Sequence record: MZ475893.1
Length of the DNA stretch: 64,000 bases
Direction: 5' to 3' (one strand)
Of this stretch, positions 38,054 through 59,530 are shown piece by piece. Every line of letters begins with the position of its first letter. The stretch's first letter is position 1. The notes beneath the pieces are model-generated. The model had not been told where the DNA came from, made no database searches, and worked only from the letters and a program-made list of their open reading frames with translations. The position numbers and the translations under genes are program-made.

Positions 38054-38168
38054 GATTATATCCTCAAGTTACAATGAAACTTCGTCCTATGGACATTAAG
38101 TTTTGAAATCAGCAAGTAAAAATTAGTATAATCCCCGTAGGAATAAACAGGAAATTTCCTAAACATTT

Positions 38169-51104: not shown

Positions 51105-51169
51105 CGTAACGTCCATACCGTCTTATGAATGTATGGTAAAATTAGTGTTCCTTAAGACATTTCTGAAAT

Positions 51170-51214: not shown

Positions 51215-52492
51215 CTACTTCTTCTTTTTCTTTTTCTTGGGCTTTTCGTCTTCGTCGTCATCTTCGACTTCGTTACCCAATTTCACAGACAGTTTGCCTT
51301 CATAAATGTCGGCCATCAGACTGAGGATAGTTGATTCCAACATAATGTCAGCAGGCACGGAGGTACTGTTGAATGCTACCTCTGCTTCTGCCAGTGCTTT
51401 CTGCAAATAGATCAGGCAAACAAGATTGACCTTAATCTTCTCTTGCTTAACCATATTCAGGAACATCTTGAGGCCAGCAGACTGCCACTTGTTTGTGTCA
51501 GAGTAATGACCAAGCGCACCGTGAAGTACCCAGCGTGCTTTCGCTACGATTGCTCGTGGGTTGTTTGCTTCACGCAGGAACTGAATGACGCCGATAAGGT
51601 CCATCGCAATGAACGCACCGATAGTCTGAACTGCTTTGCCTTCCATTTCAATTTCTGGATCGGCTGCTGCAAGTTCTGCCACCAGCTTCTTATCAAACGC
51701 TTCACCACCTTTAACTGACGCAAAGATGTTTTGCATCATCGTGATTGCACCACGCATCTGACCACCAGCATACTCTGCTACTTGGTGCAGTGCGGATTCG
51801 GCTTTATCACGCGCTTTGTCTTTCTTCGGCATGATGCCAAGCGTGTCTGCAATCTCGGACAGTCGCTTCGCAATGATGTCGGTAGGAATCGGCCTGATAG
51901 GAAGTTGTGTCATACGACTGATCATCGTATCTTTCATCTTCTCAGGGTTCGTGGTCACAAAGATGAACACGACATGAGCTGGTGGTTCTTCAATGATCTT
52001 GAGGAACTTCGATTCGGCTGCGCTCGACATAAGGTGCGCTTCATCGAGAATGAACACACGGCGCTTGAACGTAGCCGCCAGTGGTGCTGAGTCAACGATA
52101 CGCTGTGAGCCTTCAACTTTACCAGAGTCGCTACCCATATCGAACTCTTGCACGTCAGGGTGCTGGCCGTTATTGTACACCATGCGACACGAGGCACACT
52201 TACCACACGCGCTAAACGAATCACAGTTGATGTACTTTGCGACGAGACGCGCAAACGTTGTTTTACCACTACCCAGATGGCCTGTAATGATCATCGTTGA
52301 TGGAACTGTTTTCGACTTCTGCCAACCGTTCATGATCTTAACGATGTGGTCTTGACCTACATAGTCTTCGATGCGTTTCGGTCGAAACTGAGCGGCAAAG
52401 TTTACCGTAGTCAGTTCAGTAGAAGATTCGGACTTGGAACTATCTGAACCAAAGTCGCGTTTCTTCTTCTTTTTCTTTTCTTCTTTCGCCAT
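51215..52492 (-). CDS. dnaX: Clamp loader subunit, DnaX (gamma/tau)-like AAA+ ATPase
   Basis: FRP..EDYVGQDH, GHLGSGKTT, CGKCASC, FILDEAHLMS, FIFVTT, ISRM. Confidence 0.9.
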   Translation of the reverse strand: MAKEEKKKKKKRDFGSDSSKSESSTELTTVNFAAQFRPKRIEDYVGQDHIVKIMNGWQKSKTVPSTMIITGHLGSGKTTFARLVAKYINCDSFSACGKCASCRMVYNNGQHPDVQEFDMGSDSGKVEGSQRIVDSAPLAATFKRRVFILDEAHLMSSAAESKFLKIIEEPPAHVVFIFVTTNPEKMKDTMISRMTQLPIRPIPTDIIAKRLSEIADTLGIMPKKDKARDKAESALHQVAEYAGGQMRGAITMMQNIFASVKGGEAFDKKLVAELAAADPEIEMEGKAVQTIGAFIAMDLIGVIQFLREANNPRAIVAKARWVLHGALGHYSDTNKWQSAGLKMFLNMVKQEKIKVNLVCLIYLQKALAEAEVAFNSTSVPADIMLESTILSLMADIYEGKLSVKLGNEVEDDDEDEKPKKKKKKK

Positions 52493-52546
52493 GATGCTAT
52501 TGCCCTTTAGTTTGATGCTTACTGTCGATATTTACAGATTTTAGAC

Positions 52547-52582
52547 AAAAAGAAAGGACCACATCCAAAATGGAGGGTCCTT
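52547..52582 (-). terminator. Rho-independent terminator
   Basis: AAGGACC...GGTCCTT stem followed by TCTTTTT. Confidence 0.55.
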
Positions 52583-52633
52583 AAAAAGTCTATCTCTGGT
52601 ATGGGACAGCTATCACTAGTGGCAACAGGTGAT

Positions 52634-52843
52634 TCATGCAAAGCTCATCTCCCAGCGGGGCGTCACGCGGGAAAAGAGTTTAAATTCTTCAGGTGGGTTA
52701 GACTTGATTTCGTTGATGGCTGCTTCAACGTCATCGTAATCGTGAAGTCCAGCTTGTACGGTCTGCGTAACGAACGTACCATCTGAATTGATCAAGTCAG
52801 CGACGACTCGATAACTTGGGCGACTCTGTTGCATCCTAAACAT
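52634..52843 (-). CDS. Hypothetical protein (69 aa)
   Basis: AGGAG SD; CTGTAAACA motif upstream. Confidence 0.65.
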   Translation of the reverse strand: MFRMQQSRPSYRVVADLINSDGTFVTQTVQAGLHDYDDVEAAINEIKSNPPEEFKLFSRVTPRWEMSFA

Positions 52844-52899
52844 AACATCTCCTGAATATTAAACCTCAACGTTCTTGAATTATGTTTACAGATTGCTTC

Positions 52900-53295
52900 G
52901 GTCCGTCCTTGCGATTTAAAGTCAGAATAGTCTTAAACTCCAATAAGCTCTTGTTAGAACGTATTGGAGTCCACCCTGTCAGATGACGGTCGTTCAGGGC
53001 TTTCTCCCCGCACACTTATATAGCGCCGTGCGGCAGGCTGCGCTCGCGAGGTCTTATGTTTTCCACAGCAGGTGGTCCAGGAGGTAGCGTCCTCTGAAAA
53101 GATACCCGCCGCACAACAGCCTCGCTATCGGCCAATCAGCGATACGCGGTGTTACGCTGAATCGACCTAAGTGACTCTGGCCGAGTCGTGTACAAAAAAA
53201 AAGAGTTCGGTCCCAATCAAAAAGATGGCGAAAAAGAAAGGGACCGAACAAAAGGCACTCAGCGCAAACTCCTTATGCACTGTTTTTGTACTTGG
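52900..53295 (-). ncRNA. Candidate structured non-coding RNA
   Basis: About 400-nt gap with at least 8 complementary stems, late-class motif at 53298-53304, no convincing ORF. Confidence 0.45.
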
Positions 53296-53331
53296 GAAAA
53301 TTAGTGACATTCCCTTTTATTCAGAAAATTC

Positions 53332-53907
53332 TTAGTCGATGGTTAATTGCATCTGACGCAGAGTTTTGAGAAAATGTCTGCGTTGGAAAGACTCGATACG
53401 GTACGGATGATCGATATGTTTGTTCCAGCCCTGATTAAATAGCATAATGTTGTCGGGCAATTTCTCGGCACCATTCCACTTCGGTTTATCATCTACAAGC
53501 AGGTAATTGCCTGCACCATGAACCGAATCAAGGAACGCAATTTTATCAGGGTAAATCAGTGGACTAATCACATGGAAGTGATCTATCACGTGGAGAAGTC
53601 CGCGCATCGCTAGACGCGAGTAACGAGTTCCAAGTTCGTGATAGCCACGATGAGTGCAAACACCAACAGAGTAACCTTGCTGCACAAGATACTCCAACGT
53701 GCCCTTTGCATACTGACGCATACGCGCATCGAGCATGAACGTCGGACTGTTCAGTATCTCACTGAAATGAATACCGCCATTCTCAGGCGTAATGTATTCA
53801 CCTTCACCGATAGTAACTCCTTTGGCAGCAAGTTTCTTGCGCATCACAGGGTGAGTCTCAAAGAACGTATCATCCAAATCGAAAAAGATTTTCTTTAGCT
53901 TTTGCAT
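53332..53907 (-). CDS. HAD-family 5'(3')-deoxyribonucleotidase-like protein
   Basis: FFDLDDT (I), CTHR (II), K, LVDDKP (IV), LFNQGWN. Confidence 0.82.
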   Translation of the reverse strand: MQKLKKIFFDLDDTFFETHPVMRKKLAAKGVTIGEGEYITPENGGIHFSEILNSPTFMLDARMRQYAKGTLEYLVQQGYSVGVCTHRGYHELGTRYSRLAMRGLLHVIDHFHVISPLIYPDKIAFLDSVHGAGNYLLVDDKPKWNGAEKLPDNIMLFNQGWNKHIDHPYRIESFQRRHFLKTLRQMQLTID

Positions 53908-59144: not shown

Positions 59145-59208
59145 ATCGTGATTACCTGAGTTTTTCTATCTGATATTTACAGATTCAGACTTATCTTATG
59201 ACCCGTAC

Positions 59209-59519
59209 GCTACAGCGCTTGGTACGGCTACAGCTACTACAGCGGAGCTAGCGGGATACGCGCTTGGCTTGATCGAAACATGGAAGGAGAGGTACATCTT
59301 TAGGCGGCACGTTTTGTAGAGGCTGAATCCGAGAGATTAGCACTATCAATGCCCCTCCACCCATGCTGGAGCTGCTTAGAATAGCATTCTGTTAGGATAA
59401 TTTAGGTCGTCTAAACCGTGTAAATTTTCCCGAGAAAACAGACGATTTTCCGTAAAACACGCCCGTTTTCAGACAAAAACCAGAAAAATCTTAATAAAAT
59501 CAAGGACTTTTCCGAAAAC
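59209..59519. repeat. Non-coding region with CTACAGC repeats and phased TTTTC..AAAAC repeats
   Basis: CTACAGC at 59210, 59228, 59237; TTTTC(C) at 59425, 59446, 59466, 59508. Confidence 0.6.
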
Positions 59520-59530
59520 TACTCAGGAAA

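Follow-up and report, generated by a model that had tools for sequence, protein, structure and literature searches.

The largest gap between genes in the window, by which we mean the whole 64,000-nucleotide stretch of DNA analysed here (from record MZ475893.1), holds a real structured non-coding RNA, as the comparison of related sequences confirms. Together with its relatives this RNA makes up a genuine, well-supported and previously undescribed family with a pseudoknotted core. At 100% identity, the window matches the Erwinia amylovora jumbo phage pEa_SNUABM_45 (264 kb), and the genes that surround the gap (52844-53331) lie on the minus strand throughout (Table 1). The gap is left without annotation in all 46 of 46 related GenBank records. 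The initial annotation, which ranked it among the two largest gaps of the window, had read it as an uncharacterised structured RNA, either about 95 nt long or a longer read-through form. On a crude ORF map it is indeed the largest, the runner-up being 59145-59530, and that reading is supported by the absence of a conserved ORF, by covariation and by the lack of a match to Rfam, tRNA or tmRNA.

The gap aligns over its full length with relatives from other genera, and its nucleotide identity between clades (68-74%) is higher than that of the HAD gene (56-68%) and the 69-aa gene (63-75%) and is near that of the clamp loader (73-76%). It is not, however, conserved as a coding sequence. The longest ORFs in the relatives vary in strand, frame and position, the indels (among them a U-run that varies in length from 6 to 12) are not multiples of three, and the 65-codon ORF of the window at 53054-53251 overlaps the RNA; a coding gene was thus rejected, as the ORFs are not conserved. 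Covariation among homologues, which had been set in advance as a test of the RNA, is strong and is found on the minus strand. Run on the full gap in 23 distinct sequences, RNAalifold predicts 96 pairs, of which 28 show compensatory double changes. When the core was realigned across seven clades with a covariance model, 95.8% of the cells were paired, compared with 22-50% when the partners were slid, while double-sided changes affected 17 pairs and 87 cells, compared with 3-10 pairs and 5-22 cells in the slid controls; none of 500 shuffles attained the observed values. With the pseudoknot stem included, 93.8% of the core was paired and 18 pairs displayed double changes. The central domain (D2) behaves similarly, with 97.6% of cells paired against 23-36% in the slid controls, and nine double-change pairs against 0-3. 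The excess of G-U over A-C pairs (127 to 7 in the core, 21 to 2 in the central domain) identifies the minus strand as the one from which the RNA is read. The generic criteria for a structured non-coding RNA, compensatory changes above controls and no conserved reading frame, are therefore met.

A covariance model of the core (R1) detects the RNA once per genome in seven clades, and its location never varies, with the HAD gene on one side and the clamp-loader region on the other. Clades A (pEa_SNUABM_45-like phages; R1 score 99 bits), B (Alexandravirus, including Dickeya AD1, and metagenomic contigs; 132-147 bits) and C (Sasquatchvirus Y3; 113 bits) were detected by DNA search, and clades D (Yoloswag) and E (pEa_SNUABM_5 and a metagenomic contig) by nhmmer, the last two scoring 77-86 bits with R1. 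The core model itself revealed clade F (the Dickeya Salmondvirus phages JA29, JA11, JA13 and JA33 and a metagenomic contig; 39-50 bits), in which the clamp loader displays only 50% protein identity to that of the window, and clade G (Yersinia phage fHe-Yen9-02; 34 bits, E 2e-8). Two relatives further removed gave no match to the RNA: PaBG lacks the gap altogether, and Afa-NA1 contains one of 482 nt. No paralogue was found by nhmmer in the window or by R1 in the whole pEa_SNUABM_45 genome, and the RNA is present as a single copy only. The family is confined to one jumbo-phage lineage of Enterobacterales, with Erwinia, Dickeya and Yersinia hosts. Three genomes carry a hypothetical ORF annotated across the RNA, namely Yoloswag (gp204; L031:2243-2407), pEa_SNUABM_5 (gp214, on the opposite strand; L032:2234-2359) and fHe-Yen9-02 (106c; L074:2082-2288); these overlap covarying helices and are probably spurious.

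Table 1. Coordinates of the RNA, its parts and the neighbouring features in the window, broadly in the order in which the minus strand is read.
Feature	Position	Strand	Remarks
HAD/NT5C-like protein, 191 aa	53332-53907	minus	weak Pfam NT5C match; PHROG 'polynucleotide kinase' phosphatase-like
Gap with structured RNA	52844-53331	minus	488 nt between HAD/NT5C-like gene and 69-aa ORF
TAAGAATTTTCTGA motif	53321..53334	minus	overlaps HAD/NT5C-like stop codon; near-invariant in clades A-C
CACTAATTTT, promoter-like	53297-53306	minus	ends 5 nt before helix P1
ACTAATTTT copies	38119-38127, 51138-51146, 53297-53305	minus	
TCTGTAAAYA copies	22647, 39275, 52529, 52883, 57001, 59174	minus	
D1, 5' module	53190..53291	minus	three-way junction P1/P2/P3; folds with z = -5.1
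P1	53283-91/53190-98	minus	pairs GUACAAAAA with UUUUUGUAC
P2	53276-82/53260-66	minus	loop 53267-75 with invariant GGAGU; covaries
P3	53240-49/53205-14	minus	10-bp GC-rich stem, 7 G-C pairs; covaries
U9 run after P3	53194-53202	minus	UC then U9
D2, central domain, P4-P9	53046..53187	minus	covariation; model R2 matches clades A-C only
P4 hairpin	53173-87 (53173-77/53183-87)	minus	palindromic GGCC loop; invariant in clades A-C
P5	53162-67/53130-35	minus	D2 comparative alignment
P6	53156-60/53136-40	minus	loop GUAACACCGCGU
P7	53120-25/53046-51	minus	closes P8/P9 arm; covaries in clade F too
P8	53115-18/53057-60	minus	D2 comparative alignment
P9	53104-12/53065-73	minus	GCUACC loop at 53083-88
Core, ~125 nt	52935-53056	minus	shared by seven clades
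UAAGA bulge, conserved	53052-56	minus	followed by P7 3' strand; pseudoknot two nt later
H-type pseudoknot region, core start	53008..53056	minus	both stems covary between clades
Pa, pseudoknot stem	53040-44/53022-26	minus	double-sided changes in 3/5 pairs
Pb, pseudoknot stem	53028-33/53008-13	minus	double-sided changes in 5/6 pairs
Purine-rich junction GGAGAAA	53001-07	minus	reads GGGGAG together with last Pb bases
Pc hairpin	52995-53000/52973-78	minus	invariant loop GACCGUCAUC at 52982-91; Pc and inner stem covary
Pe long hairpin	52935..52972	minus	GGACUCCAAUA ... UAUUGGAGUUU; directly after Pc
3' tail AAGACTATTCTGACTTTA, 18 nt	52917..52934	minus	second TAAGA..TCTGA copy; near-invariant in clades A-C
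TCTGTAAACATAAT, promoter-like, of downstream 69-aa gene	52879..52892	minus	contains TCTGTAAACA at 52883-52892; TCTGTAAAYA recurrence
69-aa ORF	52634-52843	minus	SD 52848-54, ATG 52841-43; terminator after ORF
Clamp loader	51215-52492	minus	beyond 69-aa ORF and terminator

The order shared by the cores is P7, UAAGA, the pseudoknot, GGGGAG, a hairpin with a CCGUCA or CCGACA loop and the ACUCCAA/UUGGAGU hairpin. The pseudoknot fulfils the criterion for the H type, the strand order a-b-a'-b' with independent support for each stem, and both stems are rebuilt with other sequences in clades D-G. Pa occurs as GCGC/GCGC, ACGU/ACGU, GGCGCC/GGCGCC and GUGCG/CGCAC, and Pb as CCGCAC/GUGCGG, CCUGCAC/GUGCAGG, CCCUC/GAGGG, CCCGC/GCGGG and CCCAC/GUGGG. 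The CCGUCA/CCGACA loop was found in all clades; in D, E and G it is displayed on another hairpin, a shift that fits, as expected, a displayed recognition module. A search of the window for complements of this loop (GACCGUCAUC) returned nothing convincing, the sole minus-strand near-match being internal to a gene. In Pe, 99% of the cells are paired; the ACUCCAA/UUGGAGU part is invariant in the seven clades, its central seven pairs being without variation, and the apical part is variable, with pairs at the base and the apex covarying. The AAGACTATTCTGACTTTA tail that follows is the probable 3' limit of the long RNA. It is also the second copy (52917-52934) of a direct repeat, TAAGA-N4-TCTGA, whose first copy is TAAGAATTTTCTGA, the two copies bracketing the RNA region; in clades D and E the upstream copy is a perfect small palindrome. 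The repeat could be a protein-binding or processing site. Long-range pairing between the two motifs, proposed by RNAalifold, was rejected; it lacks covariation and the 5' copy is located upstream of the presumed start of the RNA.

D2 is restricted to clades A-C; the centre of the RNA is different and larger in clades D, E and G and short in clade F. In pEp_SNUABM_52 (L026) a 10-nt tandem duplication within the conserved P6 loop is tolerated.

The 5' module, D1, adopts an identical three-helix fold, built from differing sequences, in clades A-D. P1 forms when the bases past the U-run fold back on the 5' end, by GUAC/GUAC pairing in clades A-C and by GUAA/UUAC pairing in Yoloswag. Clade E retains P2 and P3, but there the bases past the U-run pair with the linker between P2 and P3 and not with the 5' end. 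D1 is present in clade G and absent in clade F. P3 and the U-run together meet the sequence criterion for an intrinsic (Rho-independent) terminator, a GC-rich hairpin followed by a U tract, and were missed by a simple terminator scan because the loop exceeds 8 nt. The hairpin and a tract of U5-U12 are kept in clades A-E and G despite unrelated stem sequences, and in these clades transcription from the presumed start would meet a strong terminator-like hairpin before reaching the conserved core; neither an antiterminator nor an internal promoter was found. Among near-identical phages the U-run after P3 varies from 6 to 12. The P3 loop of clade E (L032, L038) repeats the 10-nt 5' strand of the pseudoknot stem Pb (CAAUCCCUCU) and may compete for the GAGGG strand, a complementarity that exceeds shuffled controls by a narrow margin only and does not occur in clades A-C and G; the clade D loop shares 7 nt (UCCCUCU) with the Pb 5' strand. 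Tertiary pairing between the P3 loop and the GGGGAG region was not above shuffled controls, save weakly in clades D and E.

The stems that the initial annotation proposed from the window sequence alone all exist in that sequence, and comparison with relatives separates those that are kept from those that are not. The 10-bp stem followed by T9 is P3, which covaries and is replaced by the same fold with a completely different sequence in clades D, E and G. The proposed stems 53173-77/53183-87, 53008-13/53028-33, 52974-78/52995-99 and 52937-45/52962-70 correspond, respectively, to the P4 stem, which is invariant in clades A-C, to Pb of the pseudoknot, and to Pc and Pe, both of which are supported by relatives. 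Two stems, 53126-30/53140-44 and the long-range 53033-40/53117-25, are peculiar to the window sequence and give way to P5/P6 and P7, respectively. The branched domain placed at 53059-53100 survives only in part, being partly an insertion, specific to the clade of the window, inside the P9 loop. P1, P2, Pa and P7-P9 are absent from that earlier reading.

A promoter-like motif, CACTAATTTT, is found where a motif pointing into the element had been noted near 53298. Within it, a -10-like TAATTT ends 6-7 nt before the first base of P1, and CTAATT is invariant in clades A-F at a constant distance to the RNA; CTAATT(T) was not found in clade G. The shorter ACTAATTTT occurs three times in the window compared with 0.4 copies expected, in each case in minus-strand intergenic DNA, and may represent a second promoter class. 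It should be emphasized, however, that the promoter status of CACTAATTTT and ACTAATTTT is backed by motif recurrence only, with no transcription start or timing data, and that the 'late' class initially assigned to the motif has not been demonstrated. TCTGTAAAYA, by comparison, has six copies on the minus strand of the window against 0.25 expected; these are mostly intergenic, upstream of a gene and usually shortly after a terminator hairpin, and the motif is also found ahead of the clamp loader in JA29, as it is in a metagenomic relative. TCTGTAAAYA is probably the main, common promoter motif of the phage. Relatives of this jumbo-phage lineage have been reported to use the host polymerase with phage sigma factors (PMC7412058). 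The second large gap of the window (59145-59530, minus, 386 nt) ends with the TCTGTAAATA motif at 59174-59183; it is ~68% conserved in Alexandravirus and Dickeya AD1, in whose records an ORF is annotated in some cases and nothing in others, and may be a second non-coding element.

The RNA is considered new because no described RNA family matches it. At the gathering threshold Rfam 15, which covers RNase P, tmRNA, group I and II introns, 6S, T-box, yybP, CsrB/RsmB, GOLLD, ROOL and known ribozymes, gave no match in the whole window. At E<=10, the window and relatives from clades A, B, C, D and F returned only scattered chance matches of 10-22 bits, none of which was shared. ARAGORN detected no tRNA or tmRNA gene in the 64-kb window, and the initial failure to match tRNA, tmRNA, RNase P or a group I core is thus borne out. 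A weak suhB/mmgR match (20.7 bits, gathering score 41) at 52541-52600, minus, is the terminator hairpin after the 69-aa gene. A full-text literature search found no paper describing an RNA at the HAD/clamp-loader gap, and in public reads the sequence occurs only in DNA metagenome contigs and in no RNA run, one 168-nt low-depth contig in run X5 being uninformative. We took GGGGAGAAAGCC and GGUAAACUCCA to recall CR-I/CR-III of RNase P, and GGGUGG..ACCGCG to recall the T-box; both readings were dropped because the motif order differs and the covariance models do not match. A group I intron was also rejected: no second exon is needed to complete the HAD gene, the ORF downstream carries an SD of its own, and no such ORF exists in clade F. 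ROOL and GOLLD are large ornate non-coding RNAs, often borne by phages or prophages. Similar to these, the gap RNA is phage-encoded, hundreds of nucleotides long and non-coding, with covarying helices, pseudoknots and conserved loops, no regulated gene and an unresolved function. In contrast, it fails their Rfam models, is smaller (about 265-450 nt), is confined to one Enterobacterales jumbo-phage lineage and resides in a replication module, with no tRNA gene in the 64-kb window.

The interpretation that we prefer, in which our confidence is evenly divided, is that the RNA is a stand-alone scaffold or regulatory RNA that acts in trans and is made in two lengths; there are no transcript data, and no partner or target has been identified. 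Transcription would probably start at ~53291, just past the conserved CTAATT(T) motif. The first ~100 nt would fold into the three-way junction of D1, in which P3 and U9 are inferred to form a leaky intrinsic terminator, and two products would thus be expected, one of ~95 nt and one, made by read-through, of ~375 nt with its 3' end near 52917. The read-through RNA must matter, since bases past the U-run pair back to the 5' end and since no part is conserved as widely as the core (seven clades), which is located 3' of the U-run; the long form, and not only the 95-nt RNA, must therefore be functional. The ~125-nt core is inferred to be the functional heart and to act as RNA in trans, as a compact folded scaffold whose invariant loops and junctions may bind a partner (protein, small molecule or nucleic acid). 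In clade F, TCTAATTT, which overlaps the last HAD codons and stop, is followed by an RNA of ~265 nt, a strong terminator, the TCTGTAAAT promoter motif and the clamp loader, an arrangement that, judged by motifs alone, is a complete transcription unit. The RNA of the JA29 group resembles a stand-alone gene because it has its own promoter-like motif and terminator.

The core may adopt two alternative folds. In clades F and G the strand that follows the pseudoknot (GGAGUUUAUC and GGAGUAUGCC, respectively) and the Pe 3' strand are each fully complementary to a single middle segment (GGUAAACUCC and GGCAUACUCC, respectively). The two competing helices, 10-15 bp each, are mutually exclusive, and both complementarities are kept despite differing sequences. 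In the window Pc, the homologous helix, is separate from Pe, the minimum-energy fold consists of Pc and Pe, and only a 4-bp GGAG/CUCC option competes. It is this competition of the GGAG-containing strand and the Pe 3' strand for the ACUCC segment, evident in clades F and G and weak in the window, that suggests two folds; the two-state switch remains an inference from few sequences, only three of which are independent. It could be argued that the core is a bistable device toggled by the GGAG and ACUCC strands, whether as a switch that senses a ligand or protein, as a ribozyme or as a self-assembling particle, and that it belongs to an unseen class of large RNA used by giant phages for cell takeover, a proposal we regard as speculative and, on balance, improbable.

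Similarly unlikely, in our view, is a cis-regulatory leader or riboswitch, in which the core would sense a ligand or protein and two folds would control read-through or translation of the next gene of the replication module, the clamp loader in clade F and a small ORF in the window. As in terminator/antiterminator riboswitches, there is a conserved aptamer-like core, with conserved unpaired nucleotides inside covarying helices; two mutually exclusive covarying helices, clear only in clades F and G, resemble an expression platform. In clade F, the only clade with a terminator after the core, that terminator precedes the clamp loader, and in JA29 and L052 a stretch on the 3' side of Pe is, by our reading, able to pair with its 5' strand. 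There is also precedent in phage replication genes that are autoregulated through RNA pseudoknots, such as T4 gene 32; its mRNA leader pseudoknot, like other translational operators of such genes, resembles the present case, in which a lytic phage has a pseudoknot of the H type ahead of genes of the replication module. The gap RNA, however, is much larger than the T4 element and comprises several domains; it carries a promoter motif of its own, together with a terminator in clade F, and is not followed by a constant gene, the downstream gene being the 69-aa ORF in clades A-C, an ORF of 108-119 aa in D and E, a 65-aa ORF in G (not compared for homology with the 69-aa ORF) and the clamp loader in F. 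The criterion of a constant position 5' of one regulated gene is thus not met. No canonical terminator was found after the AAGACTATTCTGACTTTA tail in the window; the one terminator-like hairpin there precedes the core, the SD is 80 nt past the core, and there is neither a known ligand class nor an Rfam riboswitch match. What makes a classical leader or riboswitch less likely, although it is not excluded, is that the gene downstream is not constant and that, both in the window (clades A-C) and in clade F, a promoter motif of its own separates this gene from the RNA.

We give somewhat less credence to the possibility that the gap contains two adjacent elements, a ~95-nt base-pairing sRNA ended by the terminator (D1) and either a processed structured RNA or a 3'-UTR stabilizer of the HAD operon. 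D1 has the anatomy of the Hfq-type sRNAs of enterobacteria (a single-stranded 5' segment, then a hairpin whose loop is conserved, a linker rich in U and a GC-rich hairpin with U6-U12), the core is kept without D1 in clade F, and the TAAGA..TCTGA motifs that flank the element could be processing sites. Unlike such sRNAs, D1 has conserved bases past its U tail, and these fold back to pair with the 5' end, which makes sense only in a read-through RNA; D1 and the core, moreover, always occur together in clades A-E and G, no target has been identified, and there are no Hfq-binding data. More doubtful again is a ribozyme, acting for example in self-processing of the read-through transcript, or an RNA that multimerizes through palindromic loops. 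The short junctions, the H-type pseudoknot, the invariant unpaired GUAAGA and GGGGAG and the palindromic GGCC loop on P4 would suit such an RNA, but no known ribozyme family matches (the only match of this class, to RAGATH-13, came from a single relative and reached 22 bits where the gathering score is 80) and there is no evidence for cleavage sites. Finally, a DNA-level element (replication origin or packaging site) or an unannotated small protein gene, to which the location in the replication module, the 65-codon ORF and the ORFs annotated in three relatives might point, is largely refuted and very hard to sustain, given that the G-U excess indicates pairing in the RNA of one strand, that there is no turn in GC skew at 53 kb and there are no repeats or iterons, and that the ORFs are unconserved in frame, strand and place, with indels that are not multiples of three.

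The importance of the stand-alone, trans-acting RNA that we favour is currently limited by its narrow distribution and by the lack, as yet, of a link to a phenotype. This study nevertheless corrects the annotation of the locus, which is blank in 46 close GenBank relatives and is occupied by probably spurious ORFs in three more distant genomes. The function of the RNA is directly testable because the phages are cultivable and their hosts (Erwinia amylovora, Dickeya solani and Yersinia enterocolitica) are tractable. Non-coding RNAs of large size and ornate fold are rare, and new biochemistry has tended to emerge from each class as it was discovered; for the RNA described here the comparative support is unusually clean, extending over seven clades and including a covarying pseudoknot and a possible two-state element.
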